Of a DNA stretch of 64,000 nt, positions 1,701-62,198 are shown in pieces; position 1 is the stretch's first letter, and each line of letters starts with the position of its first letter. The notes under the pieces are model-generated. The model was given only the letters and a program-made list of their open reading frames with translations. It searched no databases and was not told where the DNA came from. Made by a program: the position numbers and the translations under genes. The DNA is taken from sequence record MW349128.1; one strand, written 5' to 3'.

Positions 1701-3373
1701 ATGGTTAGATTTTTACTCAAGAAAAAGGATTTAGAAAATGTTCCAGTTGTAACTAATCATGAATCAATTGATAAGAAAGGTGATTTCACTGAAGATGGTA
1801 TCTTCAGTGAGAAAATCTTTGGTCCTGATTCAGAAGCAGATAATATTACTAATGAAGCTATTGTAGATTTAGGTAATAATTATATTTTAAATCCGTTAGG
1901 TTATGAACGTGTTAAAAAATTAATTGGTAATAAAAGATTCCAAGAAATTATTAGTTCTGAAAAACCTATTGATGAAAATGGTAATGTAATTGAACCTGAA
2001 GATGATCATAACTCTTATATTGGTTTAATTGAATTTAGAAAGAATTTCTTAAAAATTCTTAAAGAAGAAGTTAAACGTGAAAAACGTAAAACTAAAGATT
2101 ACAATAGAGTAGTACAATGGTATTTATCTGATTTACTATTCCAAAATTATGTAACTGTATTTAGTCCTAAATTAAGACCTGCTACAGTTAATAAAGCTAC
2201 TAAAACTTTTAGACATTCTGAAATTAATAAAGATTATAATTTATTAATTGCTCATAGTAATAGTATTAAAGAACTTGATAGACATTATACAGATGATTCA
2301 GTAGAGTTACAAAAATTAAATCTATTAAGTAAAATTCAAGATGATAGTATTAATATTAGTGATCGTGTAATTAATGAGAATATTAAAGGTAAAGGTGGAA
2401 CTATTCGTAAATTACTAATGGGTAGTCGTGTTGGTTTTTCTGCACGTTCAGTAATTGTTCCAGCACCTGATCTTAAATTAAATGAAATTAGATTAAATTA
2501 TACTATTTTCTTAGAAGTTTATAAACCTATCTTAGCAAATTTAATGTATGTAACAGAAAATATTCCTTTAGCTAAAGGTGAAGAAATATTAGACAGAGCA
2601 CTAGATACATTTAATCCTAAAGTATATAAATATATGAGAGAACTAGTTGATAAAACTGAAAATGGAATGAGAGTTATTTTAAATAGGAATCCCAGTATTA
2701 GTGAAAGCTCAGTTCAAATATTGAAAATTAAAGATATTATTCAAGATATAGAATCATCAGTAGTAGGTATTAGTAATAATATACTTGCTGGTATGGGTTA
2801 TAAAGGTAGCCTTTCATTATAGTGATATAATGTCAAAAGAATTTTAATTGCTGAGAAGATTATTAAATTAATCAGCATCGATCAAAATGATTGTTCAACG
2901 ACTAAATAAATTCACTCACTAATATGAGTTTGATATAGTCTAATCTTCATAGAAAAATCTCTATGAAGTTAATATACATGGCCGATTAAATAATAGTCGC
3001 TTTAAATTGAGAGATTTATAGAAAAGAATATTAATTGCTGAGAAGATTATTAAATTAATCAGCATCAAGTTAATACAATTTGTTCAACGACTAAATATAT
3101 TCTACCTTAAATGGTAATGATATAGTCTCGTCTATATGATAATATTTATATAGATTAAGATAAACGTATGATGGTGATACTTTAAATATTATAGCACTAT
3201 TTTCAGAAGAACAATACGAACAGTTAAAAGTTCAAGATCCAGTAAATCAATTAATTTCATATAATGATGGATTATTTAATAGAACTTACTCGCTTAATAA
3301 AGACTCACAAATAGCTGTTTATTTACTAAATAACCCTAAATCAAAAAATGTAGGTATTAAAGCTAGTGAATAA
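1701..3373 (+). CDS. rpoC: Non-virion RNA polymerase beta' subunit, N-terminal catalytic part. Spliced: join(1701..2798,2981..2986,3167..3373), 436 aa
   Basis: Motifs EDGIFSEKIFGP, LMGSRVGFSARSVIVP and LNRNPSI are present. Removing two group I introns restores ATG GGT GCC GAT TAT GAT GGT GAT = MGADYDGD (the NADFDGD motif) followed by TLNII...LLNN. Confidence 0.9.
2799..2980 (+). ncRNA. Group I mini-intron R1 (182 nt, no ORF) in RNAP beta'
   Basis: P1 GGU/UAU pairs with GUAGCC, with U-G at the splice site. Core motifs: ttaattgctgagaa (P), aatcagcat (Q), gttcaacgacta (R), gatatagtc (S). P3 gaattt/aaattc. Ends ...tacatG. Confidence 0.9.
2981..2986 (+). other. 6-nt micro-exon GCCGAT (Ala-Asp of the RNAP catalytic ADYDGD motif)
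   Basis: It lies between the terminal G of R1 and the P1 splice site of R2, and it supplies exactly the two missing motif residues in frame. Confidence 0.85.
2987..3166 (+). ncRNA. Group I mini-intron R2 (180 nt, no ORF) in RNAP beta'
   Basis: P1 CGAU/UA pairs with UAGUCG. P, Q, R and S motifs are present. P3 gaatat/atattc. Ends ...taaacG before TAT GAT GGT GAT. Confidence 0.9.
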
Positions 3374-50923: not shown

Positions 50924-52258
50924 TTATTTAAAGTTTCTATAGAAATCATCAAGTCCATTAAGAACAGATTCTTCTAAGAAAACTTTAATAGTTTTATTAC
51001 TTTCTTTAATTGAAGCTAATTGAGATCCTTTATCGTAAATGATATTAGATTCATCAGCTTTATCAAATCCCATATCTTCAGCGATATATTTGATATTGTC
51101 TGAATTTTCTTTAATATAAGTTAAAACTTCTCTAGGAGAAAATTCTGTAACTTTACCGTTAGAAAACATATCAATTGATTCATTAACCATTTGTAAATCA
51201 CTAGTATTGTAATTATTATGATTCTCTGAAATTATATTTTGGATATAAGAATCTTGATGTGATGGAATTACACGTTATCTTAACTATATGATTTTCATAT
51301 AGACGAGACTATATCTTCCTAATTTATATTAGGTAATATATTTAGTCGTTGAACGGAATTTAATCCGATGCTGATTATCTTAATAAAGATTTCCAGCAAT
51401 TAATATTATTTATACTAAGCAATAATTTTTTACCCAGTCATACGTACATCTTAGCTATATGGTTTCCATATAGACGAGACTATATCATACTCTTAGTAAG
51501 AGCGAATATATTTAGTCGTTGAACAACTTGTATTAAGTTGATGCTAATTGGCTTAATTAAACTTCTTAGCAATTAATATTCTTTTTCATTATATATCACT
51601 ATATAAAGCTGCTATAATTTAACAGATTAATCTTAAAGGTTTAGTAACTTCTACTTCACCATTAGGTTTTCTTTCTATTTTACTAAAACCACGCATTGAG
51701 AAAGATACATCAGATTTTTGTCCAATTAAACCTTTCATATCCTTACCAGCTGATGTTTGAGCTGTTTCTACTTCTCCCATTAATTTATTACCATTCCACC
51801 AAGTTCTAGTGATAATATGAGAAATATTACGTTGATCAATATACATTTGACGTTTAGGTTCATCACTTAAAGGATGACCTGCAAATTATTATTCTTTATT
51901 ATTTTAATAAAGATTAGACTATATCATCTAGGTTATATATTTAGTCGTTGAACAACTTGTATTAAGTTGATGCTGATTACTTTAAATAAGATTTCAGCAA
52001 TTAATATAATTTAACGTGAGCCATTTTAACCTAAAACTCACCATAAAAAGTTCTTCTTGCTAATTTTTCTTGTACTACTGGACTATCTAAACCACTTTGG
52101 ATAACATCTTTACGATAAACACGACCATTACGGTTTTGTCTATCAGCTTCTTGTAACTCAGCAATGAATCTAACTGATTTATTATTATCTTGAACTACTT
52201 CTGGTTGAGAAGTTGTATTAGATTCATTAATAATGTAAGCTTTAATATCTTTAGACAT
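50924..52258 (-). CDS. Prohead core protease (T4 gp21-like). Spliced: complement join(52036..52258,51622..51881,51432..51442,50924..51272), 280 aa
   Basis: Motifs LQEADRQNRNGRVY, GESGHP, SFSMRG and CYDWVVIPSH are contiguous only after removing three group I introns. The exon sum of 843 nt is in frame. Confidence 0.88.
51273..51431 (-). ncRNA. Group I mini-intron PC (159 nt, no ORF) in protease
   Basis: P1 ACUGGGU/GCUUAGU; P10 GUAAU/AUUAU. P, Q, R and S motifs present. Ends ...taacG. Confidence 0.88.
51432..51442 (-). other. 11-nt micro-exon TATGACTGGGT (Y-D-W-V)
   Basis: Lies between the terminal G of PB and the P1 site of PC, and restores CYDWVVIPSH. Confidence 0.85.
51443..51621 (-). ncRNA. 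Group I mini-intron PB (179 nt, no ORF) in protease
   Basis: P1 CUGU/UA with UAGCAG. P4 covaries (ttgcta/ttagca). R and S motifs present. Ends ...gtacG. Confidence 0.88.
51882..52035 (-). ncRNA. Group I mini-intron PA (154 nt, no ORF) in protease
   Basis: P1 GUGAGU/GCUCAC with U-G; P10 CA/UG. P, Q, R and S motifs present. Ends ...aatttG. Confidence 0.88.
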
Positions 52259-57092: not shown

Positions 57093-60000
57093 ATGAAGAC
57101 TATGGCTATAACAAAATTAAAGAAAAAAATTTATTACGATTATAAAACTAATAACGTAAGCTTTTTAAGAGTTGCTAAAGAACTTAAAGATAATAATATA
57201 CAAAATTATGGTCTACCATTAACTCTATATGATAAGAAATTAATTGGCGTTGATCCTTGGGATGAAGATTTAGATAATGAAATGAAAACTCGTGTTATTA
57301 GGGAAGCTAAACTTAATATATGGTTTTATTTAAGAGAAGTTATCAGAGTTCCAGTTCCAGGTGGTAAGGTAATGTATGAACTTCATAGAGGTAACTTAGC
57401 TATGACGTTTTGTATGCTGCATAATTTAGATACTGCAATAATGTTACCACGTCAGCACTATAAAACATATTCTGCAGTATGTTATTATTCATGGATTATG
57501 TTATTGGTAGGTAATAACTATACAATGTTATTTACACATAAATCATACTCGGACACTACTGAAAACCTTAAAAGATTAAAAAATCTATTCAAAGAGAAGT
57601 GTTTACCTGAATATGTATTAGCTAACTTTGGAGATAAAAATGATAGAGATAAAATTAATGAATTTTCTTTAGCAAGTAATAACAACACAATAAAAACAGT
57701 ATCACCTCCAACAAATGCTGAGAGTAAAATACGTGCTCTCATTAAACTCTATTAACTGCTGAAAAAGATACTAAACCAATCAGCATCAATCAAATTGATT
57801 GTTCAACGACTAAATATAGAGATAATTAATATTATAAGATATAGTCTAGTGTGTATGAATATCATACAATGTATTACGGCAAACAAAGCAGGAAGAGGTA
57901 GCACCGTATGTAGATGCAGTGCATAAAGATTTTTAATTGCTGGAAGACTAATAATGAAGTTAATCAGCATCACTTTAATTAGTGTTCAACGACTAAATAA
58001 AATCAATTTTAATAATTTTTACTGTTAACATTCCTTTATCAGTACGATAACGGAGGGATAAAATGCCTAAAGGTGTTAAAAGTAAAGAAAAATTCATAGA
58101 ACAAAAAAATAAAACTTTTAAAGAAATAAAAGATATCAATGGAGATAAATTTGAAATACTGGGAGAGTATAAAAATTCTAAAGAACCAATTAAATGTCAT
58201 TGTAATATATGTGATAGAGATTTTTTCTTACCTACTGAAAAACTAAGATTAAAAAGAAAATTCTGTAATAGAAAAGATTGTAGATATTCAGAAAAACCCA
58301 AGAATTCTAAAGGTAAAGAAACTTTTTTAATAGAATTAAAAGATAAGTTCGGATTTAATTATACTTATATTGAAGGATTCAATGGAATGAATAAAAAGTG
58401 TAGATTCCGTTGTGGAAAATGTGGAAATATAAGATATTTTGCAAAGCCTTCTACTCTAATGGATAAAAGAAAGAAGTATAATTCAGTAAACTGTAACAGA
58501 TGTATAAATAATGAAAATTATATCATATTAGATAGTCAAGAATTATCTAAAAAGACAACAGAAGAGTTTCAAGGTGAATTAGATATGATATTTGGATATA
58601 ATAAATTTAATGTGTTAACTGAATATACTAGGAGCAAAGATTATATCTATTTGAAGAGTAATGACTGTGGACACAAATTTAAAACGAGACCAGATGATAT
58701 ACTTAAAAGAAAAAGATGTAGTGTATGTTCTAAAAGTATAGGAGAAATTGCCATCATTGAATTACTTCAAGAGAATAATGTAGAATATGAGAATGAAGTT
58801 ACTTTTGAAGGATCTAGTTTTAGATTTGATTTTTATTTTAAAAAAATAAATACTGTAGTTGAAGTAGATGGAAAAGGTCATATAAAAGGTTATGGAAATT
58901 TCATTAATGATAAAAGAAACAAAAGCAAAAGAACACCTGAAGATATAAAAAAATTAGATAATGAAAAAGATGAATTTATAAGAAGCAAAGGAATAAATAT
59001 GATACGTCTCCCTTACCAGAATAGAATAAATGAAGAATTAATTATCCCTATGAAAAAATTATTAAAATTATGATATAGTCTGATCTGCATGGATTATCAT
59101 GTAGTTTAACGTAAATGACCTATGGTTTGGCTTGATGAGTGGGCGTTTATACCGCATAATCAAGTAATGTTTGAAGCGATGAGTAAAAAGGCTCCATCTT
59201 TATAGAAATATAGATGATGAATAATATTAACTGCTGAAAAGTTTAAAAACCAATCAGCATCATTAAATAATGTTCAACGACTAAATTTATTAAATCTTAA
59301 AAAGATTATGATATAGTCTGATCTGCATGGATTATCATGCAGCTAACATAAATGACCAGCAATAAGTACAGCTTCAAGAATTGCAAAAGAAAATGGTTCT
59401 CCTTATGGACTTCTTATCACAACTACACCTAAAATGACTGGGTGAAGATAAATTAAAATTTATCTTAAGGACTTTATTAATTGCTGAAAGGTCCTTAGAG
59501 CTTAATGAGCTACAACGTGACTGGCAACAGTGAGCGTGATATGCTTAAAAATCATTAAGATTGGAAAATCAGCAGCTAATTTTCAATTTAATAAATTATT
59601 AAATCAATAATGAACAACTCTTTATACAAAAGATGTAGGAGTTGGTAATTTTGGATTTTTATGAAAAATTAAATAAAAAATTTGATAACAGTATAATAAC
59701 AAAAGAAAAATATATAAACGGCAATGAAAAGATTAAATTCTATTGTAAAAATTGTAAAAATTATTTTTATTCTAAACCTAGAAAAATTATTGAATCATCT
59801 TATAAATCATGTCATTTATGTAGGAAAAGGGAAAAAGAAAATATATTTAGGAATAATCTCATTAATATGATAAATAAAGAAATATATGAAATTATTGAAA
59901 TGAAAGATCCTATAAAAAATAATGAAAAATTTTCTTTAAAACATAAAGAATGTGGAAATATCTTTTCTATATCAGTGAGTAATTTTAAAAAAGGAAGAAA

Positions 60001-62190
60001 ATGCCCATATTGCTCAAATAAGCCTATGAAAAGGGATCAAAATTTCTTTTTAGAAAAAATAAATAATATTGATTCAAGTTTCTTAAAAGAATATGAATTA
60101 AAAAGCAATTATATAAGCGTTAACGAAAATATTAAAATTAAACATAAAGAATGTGGAAATATCTTTAATACTACCCCTAATAGAATTTATAGAGGTAATA
60201 GATGTAGTATGTGTTCACATAAATCTGATAAATATAATTTTAAAGAGGTAAAGAGTATAATAGAAAAAGATGGAAAATTTAAACTTTTATCTAATAATTA
60301 TATAAATAATAAATATAAATTAAAAATAAAATGTCTTAACTGTGGTAATATACAAGAGAAAAGTTTAGTTACATTTCAAGATAAAAGAAATAGAAAATGT
60401 ATATGTGAAAAATATTCTTTACCAATTCGTTATATAACAAATTTTTTAATAGATAAAAATATAAATTTTGAGCTAGAAAAAAGATTTGATAATTGTAGAA
60501 ATATTAGACCTTTACCCTTCGATATTTTTATAAATGATTTTAATATTCTAATTGAATATGATGGGGAACAACATTTTAAACCAATATATGGTATAGAAAA
60601 ACTCAATAAAACTAAAATAAATGATGAAATAAAAAATAATTTTTGTAATAAAGAAGGAATAGAATTAATTAGAATAAACTGTTATGATAATTATGAAGAT
60701 AAAATTGAAAATTTAGTTCAACGACTATCGAAAGTTGAGTATACATCGTGAGGATATATACAATATAAATGAGTAGAGTACAGCCAAGCGGTTAGTTTTT
60801 AAGTGATATTAGCTTAATATAATTCTATTAAATGGAAACATAAAGACGTGTATATTAACACATATACGTAAGATATAGTCTCAACGTTTAGGGAAAACCT
60901 AAAGAAGTTCATAAGAGAACTGGTATAGATTAGCGATCTATATTGAAGATTTTGAGTACTCTCGACACATCTCAAGGGCAATTTTTCTTTCAACAAATGA
61001 ATGAAGCAGCTCAATGGAATGAAAAAATATATGATTATTTTATTGATAGTGAAGAAGAAGGAAATTCTAAATTAGAAAAATACATGGAAGATAATTCAAA
61101 TAATGAATTCATGTATATAGAATATTCATATAAAGAATTAGGTAAAGATGAAAATTGGTTAGAAAAACAAAAGAGACAAATTGGTTCTTTAGAAGCTGTT
61201 AAACGTGAGATATTATTGGAATGGGCTTATAGTTCTGATGATTCATTATTCTCTGAAGAACAAATGACTGAAATATCTATGTATGCTAATAAAGAAATAT
61301 ATAATACTCTTGAATTTAATATTGATGGTAGAACTTATTATGTAAATATGATTAAATATATGGATAATATTACAGAGAAAAATTGGCTTATTGGTATTGA
61401 TATGTCTGGTGGTTTAGGACGAGATAATACAGCGTTTACTGTAGTGGATCCAGCTACTTTGGAACCAGTAATGACTTTTAAAAATAATGTAATTAATGGA
61501 CCTACATTCAGAAAATTAATTAAAGAATTGGTTAGTTTCTATATACCTAACGCTATATTAATACCTGAACGTAACTATGCAGGTTTAACAGTAATTGATC
61601 ATATGATATCTTATGATGGTTTAGAATCTAATTTATTCTATACGCTTAAAACTCGTGTAGCTGAAAAGCAAGTAGAAAATAAAAGTTTATTTAATGAAAT
61701 GTCTAGATATAGCAAAACTGAAAAAGTTAAAAAAGAAACTCGTAGATATGGTATTGATACAACTAAAAAATCTCGTGATATAATGTTAAATGAAATATTA
61801 TCTATGCTTGTTGAAGAAAAACCACATTTAATTAATAATAAACCACTTTTCCAAGAAATCAAATCTTTACAAATGATTAAAGGACGTATTGACCATCCAC
61901 CGGGAGGTCACGATGACTTAATGATGTCTTATTTATTCTGTTTATATGCGTATTACTATGAAAAAGATATTAATAAATTTGTAAAAATTAAATATGGTTC
62001 TAAACTCTCACCTAACAGTGAAAATGCAGAAGGAATGAAAAAAGAACAAGAAGCTAGAAGAAAAGATATTGCTTCAATTAAACGTATCAATAGTGTTATT
62101 GAAGGAAATGATATGAGTAATTCTATATTTGGTCAACAACAAAAACCAATGGATAACAATAATAAACGTATTATGGATTTATTCAAATAA
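57093..62190 (+). CDS. terL: Terminase large subunit. Spliced: join(57093..57725,57879..57907,59118..59184,59356..59430,60955..62190), 679 aa
   Basis: Walker A-like LPRQHYKT, then AGRGSTVP, Walker B VWLDEWAF, motif C LITTTP and nuclease IGIDMSGGLGRD and HDDLMM. The central motifs become contiguous only after removing four introns. Confidence 0.88.
57726..57878 (+). ncRNA. Group I mini-intron T1 (153 nt, no ORF) in terminase
   Basis: P1 UGAGAGU/GCUCUCA; P3 ctctat/atagag. P, Q, R and S motifs present. Ends ...ttacG. Confidence 0.9.
57879..57907 (+). other. 29-nt micro-exon (ANKAGRGSTV)
   Basis: In frame between T1 and T2. Confidence 0.85.
57908..59117 (+). mobile_element. Group I intron T2 (1210 nt), mini-intron-type core with a homing endonuclease ORF in the P8 loop
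   Basis: P1 GCACCGU/GCAGUGC. R motif lies before the ORF and S motif overlaps its stop codon. Ends ...aaatG. Confidence 0.88.
58063..59073 (+). CDS. Intron-encoded putative homing endonuclease (Cys-rich repeats plus Vsr/DUF559-like nuclease domain)
   Basis: Multiple CxxC motifs; C-terminal FRFDFYF...VVEVDGKGH...IRLPY. Confidence 0.8.
   Translation: MPKGVKSKEKFIEQKNKTFKEIKDINGDKFEILGEYKNSKEPIKCHCNICDRDFFLPTEKLRLKRKFCNRKDCRYSEKPKNSKGKETFLIELKDKFGFNYTYIEGFNGMNKKCRFRCGKCGNIRYFAKPSTLMDKRKKYNSVNCNRCINNENYIILDSQELSKKTTEEFQGELDMIFGYNKFNVLTEYTRSKDYIYLKSNDCGHKFKTRPDDILKRKRCSVCSKSIGEIAIIELLQENNVEYENEVTFEGSSFRFDFYFKKINTVVEVDGKGHIKGYGNFINDKRNKSKRTPEDIKKLDNEKDEFIRSKGINMIRLPYQNRINEELIIPMKKLLKL
59185..59355 (+). 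ncRNA. Group I mini-intron T3 (171 nt, no ORF) in terminase; 3' boundary anomalous
   Basis: P1 GAUG-AGU/GCU-C-CAUC. P, Q, R and S motifs present. Frame requires the exon to resume at CCA 59356, which makes A59355 the terminal base. Confidence 0.8.
59431..60954 (+). mobile_element. Group I intron T4 (1524 nt), full-size phage IA2-like, with a homing endonuclease ORF in the P6 region
   Basis: P1 CACCU/GGGUG; P10 AGU/ACU. Extended P5, aatcagcagc, gttcaacgactatcg, gtacagccaagcgg (P7.1/7.2 region), aagatatagtc and several P9 helices. Ends ...ttttG. Confidence 0.88.
59642..60751 (+). CDS. Intron-encoded putative homing endonuclease (Cys-rich repeats plus Vsr/DUF559-like nuclease domain)
   Basis: Repeated KHKECGNIF...CxxC; C-terminal LPFDIFI...LIEYDGEQHF. 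The 3' end overlaps the intron R motif. Confidence 0.82.
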   Translation: MVILDFYEKLNKKFDNSIITKEKYINGNEKIKFYCKNCKNYFYSKPRKIIESSYKSCHLCRKREKENIFRNNLINMINKEIYEIIEMKDPIKNNEKFSLKHKECGNIFSISVSNFKKGRKCPYCSNKPMKRDQNFFLEKINNIDSSFLKEYELKSNYISVNENIKIKHKECGNIFNTTPNRIYRGNRCSMCSHKSDKYNFKEVKSIIEKDGKFKLLSNNYINNKYKLKIKCLNCGNIQEKSLVTFQDKRNRKCICEKYSLPIRYITNFLIDKNINFELEKRFDNCRNIRPLPFDIFINDFNILIEYDGEQHFKPIYGIEKLNKTKINDEIKNNFCNKEGIELIRINCYDNYEDKIENLVQRLSKVEYTS

Positions 62191-62198
62191 AATATATA

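Follow-up and report, generated by a model that had tools for sequence, protein, structure and literature searches.

A group I intron in the terminase gene of Staphylococcus phage Machias with both canonical splice signals intact and offset by one base from the reading frame

A U.G wobble at the 5′ splice site and a G as the last intron base are two near-universal rules of group I splicing. The large-subunit terminase gene of Staphylococcus phage Machias raises the question of how the essential gene of a viable phage is spliced at an intron, T3, where it appears unable to obey both. The stretch of DNA analyzed here (the window) comprises bases 1 to 64000 of the record of Machias (MW349128.1), a 274-kb AR9-like jumbo phage; the 5.3 kb around T3 are 100% identical to this record. 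The terminase gene (57093-62190) is interrupted by four group I introns, T1 to T4, and its counterparts in the sister phages SA1 and S6 are uninterrupted, with 677 codons. GenBank lists the Machias large subunit as two separate CDS (57102-57755 and 60997-62190), with an annotated homing endonuclease and a hypothetical ORF between them. Exons 2, 3, and 4 were missed by this annotation. According to the paper describing Machias (bioRxiv 10.1101/2020.12.14.422802), the terminase was the only intron-split gene for which a mature product could not be pieced together from the exons.

Exon borders were set by colinearity with intronless sister-phage genes, using tblastn of the SA1 protein against the window together with the junction DNA. 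Exons were compared singly, with the uninterrupted SA1 gene as the reference, and the analysis covered 164 kb of the Machias record via its annotated regions. Colinearity with intronless alleles was used instead of splice-site prediction by pairing scores, which was too noisy in this AT-rich DNA. SA1 TerL covered all five exons (Table 1); exon 5 is 99.8% identical to the Machias record, and exon 3 aligns without gaps to PALS_2 over 59118-59183 (blastn). Splicing of T1, T2, and T4 would join the exons exactly as in the intronless genes. The Walker B and T-T-T-P coupling motifs are both present in the Machias terminase, and the stretch from one to the other aligns without gaps across 25 terminases, namely SA1 and 24 homologs with 34 to 54% identity; these more distant homologs carry Pfam PF03237. 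T1 has a P1 with 6 bp below the wobble and a P10 of 2 bp. The P1 of T2 covaries with that of its LY01 ortholog, and both introns follow the P9.0 rule described below. PB50 carries T1 to T3 and lacks T4, PALS_2 has T4 only, and AH12, Madawaska, MarsHill, and LY01 show other sets of introns, among them one located 3 to 4 bases downstream from the T3 site. Nine related phages together show at least five sites of intron insertion in the ∼170 nt of coding sequence from the end of exon 1 to T-T-T-P. In LY01, the terminase gene contains a fifth intron, located after codon 540 (locus L009:3850-5776), with an ORF annotated as a mobile element protein.

Table 1. Positions in the window of the terminase exons and introns and of the predicted T3 ribozyme elements
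Feature	Position	Strand	Description and basis
Exon 1	57093-57725	+	Ends at T57725, phase 0; 90% identity to SA1 TerL (tblastn)
Exon 1 junction	57725	+	Colinear with SA1, S6, and PALS_2
Intron T1	57726-57878	+	153 nt, ORF-less; canonical U.G at 5′ site, terminal G57878
Exon 2	57879-57907	+	29 nt; colinear with A-N-K-A-G-R-G-S-T-V of intronless relatives
Intron T2	57908-59117	+	Canonical, U57907 at -1, terminal G59117; colinearity
T2 ORF	58063-59073	+	Annotated homing endonuclease
Exon 3	59118-59184	+	Walker B region, P-M-V-W-L-D-E-W; 95% identity (tblastn); ends at T59184 if omega-A, at G59183 if the 5′ site is shifted
Intron T3, omega-A reading	59185-59355	+	171 nt, last base A59355
Intron T3, alternative	59184-59354	+	171 nt, first base U, last base G
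Disputed base	59355	+	Ends the intron (omega-A) or completes an AGA codon for Arg
T3 P1 hairpin	59181-59194	+	59181-59184 pair with 59191-59194; wobble U59184.G59191
T3 P2 hairpin	59195-59216	+	GNRA-type loop, abuts P1 directly; fold and Rfam alignment
T3 P7, 5′ strand	59273-59287	+	Core element with the G-binding pair; identical to T1 and T2
T3 P7, 3′ strand	59310-59322	+	Core element, followed by J7/9 at 59320-59322
T3 P9 hairpin	59323-59342	+	Loop 59330-59335, inverted in PB50
T3 3′ tail	59343-59354	+	12 nt, matches the family consensus, ends at G59354
Exon 4	59356-59430	+	25 codons, ends in L-I-T-T-T-P; tblastn and translation
Intron T4	59431-60954	+	Canonical, U59430 at -1, terminal G60954
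T4 ORF	59642-60751	+	Inside T4
Exon 5	60955-62190	+	C-terminal nuclease part; 74% identity to SA1 (tblastn)

The conflict lies at the borders of T3, whose 3′ end reads G59354, A59355, and then C59356. Exon 3 ends in frame with F-E-A-M-S, followed by a stop inside T3, and exon 4 reads P-A-I-S...L-I-T-T-T-P from 59356. An initial annotation had already proposed that reaching L-I-T-T-T-P requires this start, which translation and tblastn with the SA1 terminase bore out, as they did its claim that the frame beginning at 59355 is closed: joining U59184 to A59355, as both canonical signals dictate, shifts the frame into a stop at 59430-59432. Both canonical splice signals of T3 are intact, and they are offset by one base relative to the reading frame. 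Strictly canonical splicing is thus predicted to produce a dead, frameshifted mRNA, and an in-frame message would need a one-base slip at one end of the intron. Two junctions provide it. With U59184 joined to C59356, T3 ends at A59355 and the exons meet in an AGU codon (Ser); with G59183 joined to A59355, T3 ends at G59354 and the exons meet in an AGA codon (Arg). The tblastn frames and translations agree with the earlier argument that a 5′ site placed by P1 after 59184 leaves A59355 as the last base of T3. No other combination of U at position -1 and a terminal G preserves both frame and length. Three further candidates were rejected. Joining U59180 after excision up to G59354 yields a protein one residue shorter in the region that is ungapped in the 25 terminases, with no guide pairing; extending exon 3 into T3 meets the stop, and beginning exon 4 further upstream meets an in-frame TGA at 59353-59355. 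Among the 18 family members checked, T3 appears to be the only one not spliceable by the rules.

T3 is an ORF-less mini-intron of ∼170 nt. It gave a full-length match to RF00028 over 59191-59342 (37.3 bits, E value of 2.6e-8 in a 251-base search), which is below the gathering score of 50. This short search alone recovered RF00028; at the gathering threshold, Rfam gave no match in the whole window, and a relaxed search of 10 kb returned noise alone. The predicted P1 consists of 4 bp topped by U59184.G59191, both in the minimum-free-energy fold and in a wobble-constrained table of P1 pairings. The 5′ border runs from T59184 through a run of A to G59190, G59191, and three further guide bases, a guide of the type found in the protease intron PA. 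As the initial annotation had pointed out, G59190, the guide base beside the wobble G, is able to pair with exon base C59356, and the resulting P10 is 1 bp long. In the putative P9.0, 59352-59353 pair with 59321-59322. The T3 core, including a standard G-C G-binding pair, is identical to those of T1 and T2.

The earlier suggestion that the anomaly stems from a sequencing or assembly error, i.e., one base too many at a T3 junction, is very unlikely, and we consider it the least probable of the explanations weighed here. The uracil DNA of these phages does hamper sequencing, according to the phage authors (bioRxiv 10.1101/2020.12.14.422802). Nonetheless, PB50, a separate isolate that was independently sequenced and assembled, has the same T3 and both of its junctions, despite divergence from Machias of 2.5 to 9% in neighboring segments (3.6% in exon 1, 2.5% in the T2 endonuclease ORF, and 9% in exon 4), and neither junction lies within an exon homopolymer. 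The shared junctions thus argue against an assembly error. The sole T3 difference between the two phages is the inversion of the 6-nt P9 loop, and T1 shows no differences. Taken together, the ribozyme parts of T1, T2, and T3 accumulated 1 point difference in ∼480 nt, compared with the 2.5 to 9% in exons and endonuclease ORF, which indicates that the three ribozymes are under purifying selection. All seven exon 4 differences between Machias and PB50 fall at third codon positions of the 59356 frame, and one of them creates a stop in PB50 if read in the shifted frame; exon 4 is thus clearly translated in the 59356 frame in both phages. Collectively, these comparisons indicate that T3 is a real, selected group I intron in the essential terminase gene of Machias and also in PB50. 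Among the public runs searched for Machias, none contained the phage itself or its RNA, and the best matches came from relatives. One of these, the tick metatranscriptome RNA run X9, leaves T3 uncovered. Its contigs of a Machias relative's terminase correspond to window positions 60976-62192 with 95 to 99% likeness, and the exon 4/exon 5 boundary is contiguous in them, as expected either for a phage devoid of T4 or for spliced RNA.

At the 5′ side, T3 was compared with 17 sibling introns (T1, T2, T4, and 14 others) of Machias, LY01, MarsHill, and AH12, which interrupt terminase, protease (PA, PB, and PC), RNA polymerase, and NrdE genes. Their junctions were placed by colinearity or, for NrdE, by protein motif. 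All 17 have a wobble at the 5′ site, U.G in 16 instances and C.A in one, and all end in G. In the Machias virion RNA polymerase beta-prime gene, the intron at 115342-115491 of the record follows a C (Gly codon GGC) that faces a guide A, whereas in MarsHill the intron occupying this site comes after a U (GGT) opposite a guide G. This intron adjoins the catalytic D-F-D-G-D motif. U.G to C.A is a classical isosteric exchange, and its natural occurrence at one site thus shows that wobble geometry is under selection in these Staphylococcus jumbo phage introns, the family to which T3 belongs. The guide of protease intron PA offers a parallel: the 3′ exon there begins with C, which pairs with the base 5′ of the wobble G, just as C59356 could pair with G59190 in T3. 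The 5′-side evidence therefore favors cleavage after U59184; with the wobble present and first-step fidelity high, this is where the cut is expected.

The 3′ side points the other way. We checked 11 Machias siblings against intronless PALS_2 or UFV_DC4 alleles, except for the NrdE intron, which was placed by a conserved protein motif. In all of them, the tail of 10 to 13 nt after P9 ends in G, and in 10 of the 11 the two bases before this G pair with bases 2 and 3 of J7/9 (the P9.0 rule). These pairs covary, with three pair types among the Machias siblings. In T3, the rule holds for G59354 and fails for A59355 as the terminal base, which favors G59354 as the intron end. Since the G-binding core of T3 is identical to that of its canonical siblings, nothing in the ribozyme seems adapted to A, and an adjacent G is expected to outcompete A for the G-binding site. 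Consistently with the initial annotation, T2 ends in the same five bases as T3, followed by the same three exon bases, and is spliced after its G59117. With both canonical signals intact, the main product expected of a textbook ribozyme would be the out-of-frame mRNA. Short exons were seen in two other Machias genes. In the non-virion RNA polymerase beta-prime gene (2799-3166), an exon of 6 nt (2981-2986), which encodes Ala-Asp of the catalytic G-A-D-Y-D-G-D stretch, separates mini-introns 2799-2980 and 2987-3166, as checked against the intronless PALS_2 gene. The prohead protease gene (51272-52036, minus strand) contains three mini-introns and an 11-nt exon (51432-51442), and all three of its junctions are canonical by colinearity with PALS_2.

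The residue encoded at the junction bears on the choice between the two in-frame options. All eight intronless relatives have an Arg codon (AGA, AGG, or CGT) at the T3 site. The Machias flanks up to 59183 and from 59355 match the intronless sequences of SA1, S6, PALS_2, and Madawaska base for base; elsewhere, the codon is AGG in MarsHill and LY01, CGT in AH12, and AGA in another intronless allele, found on an indoor-metagenome DNA contig of a relative. More widely across the terminase family, however, this residue is V, I, R, K, T, S, A, G, or L, and two natural homologs have Ser. A Ser at this position is thus acceptable, which weakens the Arg argument for a shifted 5′ site.

We infer from sequence comparison which end of T3 gives way and with what yield. 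Our tentative preference, held at somewhat less than even probability, is that omega-A is the productive route; we rank it above a shift of the 5′ site on the grounds of ribozyme biochemistry rather than of data from Machias. In the omega-A route, the first step would be normal, with guanosine attacking after U59184, and the second would ligate exon 3 to C59356 with A59355 in the omega position, the single G59190-C59356 pair aligning the 3′ exon. It would probably be a low-yield route, competing with ligation after G59354. The U59184.G59191 P1 as the minimum-free-energy pairing, the wobble in 17 of 17 siblings, and the demand of the frame speak for omega-A, as do the PA-like guide, the variability of the junction residue, and the natural omega-A precedent ND5-717 (PMC8146996). 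Against it stand the 1-bp P10, the consensus tail and P9.0 at G59354, and the rival junction that restores the relatives' Arg; furthermore, deletion of the single base A59355 would make T3 canonical, yet it is fixed in neither phage. The omega-A intron put forward in the initial annotation remains plausible, since the frame demands it once the P1 site is accepted, although the tail, P9.0, and the unadapted core point to G59354. A slightly more doubtful proposition is that exon ligation after an adenosine, despite a G one base upstream, is carried out by a phage group I ribozyme whose G-binding site is unmodified. The combination of a phase-2 5′ site with G59354, which the initial annotation had named as the case against its own reading, is less probable and, in our view, rather unlikely. 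Here, cleavage would occur after G59183, U59184 would be the first intron base, and the exon would resume at A59355. This would restore exactly the intronless flank sequence of SA1, S6, PALS_2, and Madawaska, with the Arg of all eight relatives, and render all 3′ features canonical (consensus tail, P9.0, and unchanged G-binding core). Moreover, U at -1 is impossible for a phase-2 intron in any Arg codon, so that there is no easy fix and the state could persist. The anomaly would then lie at position -1, where a purine in a Watson-Crick G-C pair would replace the U.G wobble; we know of no natural intron with G at this position. The perfect U.G wobble one base further should capture the first step, as all 17 siblings use a wobble and U.G covaries to C.A at one site, and this decoy could be removed by one substitution, yet it is retained in both phages. 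Among more distant terminases, the Arg itself is not conserved. Published mutagenesis of the Anabaena intron also argues against such a cut, since it reports that G is required on the guide side of the cleavage site and that the reaction is lost when the pair is reversed to G-U (PMC12355055). We therefore still lean toward omega-A.

A further reading, improbable and partly overlapping with both of these, is that T3 is a tolerated defect hitchhiking with the T2 homing endonuclease; most transcripts would be out of frame, and a small in-frame fraction, produced at either shifted site, would suffice. The location of T3 only 67 nt downstream of the T2 insertion site, the T2/T3 gene conversion discussed below, and the intactness of both canonical signals fit this idea, but the T3 ribozyme seems to be under purifying selection like those of T1 and T2, and the curative one-base deletion has not been fixed. 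Translational recoding, in which both canonical sites are used essentially always and a +1 shift or four-base decoding absorbs the extra base, is highly improbable. It would explain the conservation of both canonical signals, and dropping any one of the four junction bases leaves a residue seen there in the family. However, neither a slippery sequence nor a stop codon lies in the context of the junction, a search of the first 164 kb of the Machias genome turned up no tRNA genes, and the shifted frame has a stop in PB50. Even jointly, recoding and sequencing error account for a very small share of the probability.

The composition of T3 suggests how the conflict may have arisen. T3 seems to be chimeric, with a 5′ end resembling those of PA and T1 and a 3′ end resembling that of T2, each bringing its own canonical border, and its 3′ part is ∼88% identical to that of T2. 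The P9 loops (59092-59097 in T2, 59330-59335 in T3) are the same within each phage and reverse-complemented between Machias and PB50. The inversion common to T2 and T3 of each phage thus means a loop inversion followed by gene conversion, and the two introns, 67 nt apart, exchange sequence in this way. A conversion scar from T2, suggested earlier as the origin of the terminal A, is supported to the extent that T2/T3 conversion does occur. The terminal bases themselves were not covered recently, since T2 and T3 have different tails of 12 to 13 nt, both of them conserved between Machias and PB50. BLAST with the 5′ part of T3 (P1-P2) returned matches in Machias and PB50 and no other close relative, and two pattern scans of viral contigs found no further T3 copies. 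A scan of metagenome contigs yielded at least 119 chance matches, and none of the stretches inspected had an intron context; contigs with relatives of the T2 endonuclease carried a different intron, 3 to 4 bases downstream of the T3 site.

If omega-A is the productive route, the guide sequence, not the terminal G, would select the 3′ site, competing out-of-frame ligation might throttle terminase production, and T3 would be the first omega-A intron outside hexacoral mitochondria. If the 5′ site is shifted instead, T3 would be cut after a purine, for which we know of no earlier natural example among introns. The three canonical introns in the same transcript offer built-in controls. The case bears on the flexibility of splice-site choice by small ribozymes, which is relevant to intron-based RNA circularization tools, on whether poor splicing can throttle a late phage gene, and on annotation, with the terminase listed as two fragments in the public record.

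T3 shares with its siblings (T1, T2, T4, PA, PB, PC, the RNA polymerase and NrdE introns, and the terminase introns of LY01, MarsHill, and AH12) the common core elements, a short P1, a P9 hairpin followed by a 10- to 13-nt tail, and P9.0 with J7/9; unlike T3, all 17 preserve the reading frame when spliced at the wobble (position -1) and the terminal G. The introns of phages Twort, SPO1, and AR9 are, to our knowledge, described with canonical splice sites. They are likewise group I introns in essential late or replication genes, some with homing endonucleases (bioRxiv 10.1101/2020.12.14.422802). In engineered variants of the Tetrahymena intron, A is an efficient last base only with a compensating change in P7, whereas T3 retains the standard G-C binding pair. 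Rescue of terminal G-to-A mutants by changing the G-binding pair to A-U was reportedly described there by Michel in 1989 and by Been and Perrotta in 1991. The hexacoral (sea-anemone) mitochondrial ND5-717 group I intron is a natural omega-A intron with transcript support (PMC8146996). It differs from T3, a 170-nt phage mini-intron, in being organellar, vertically inherited, and host to genes in P8 (PMC8146996). T3 also departs from this type in having a usable G59354 directly before A59355, with P9.0 pairing to match, and its putative omega-A follows from the frame argument. ND5-717 nonetheless resembles T3 as we tentatively read it, in that it interrupts an essential protein gene and has A as its last base instead of the otherwise universal G, and its ligated mRNA has been observed (PMC8146996).
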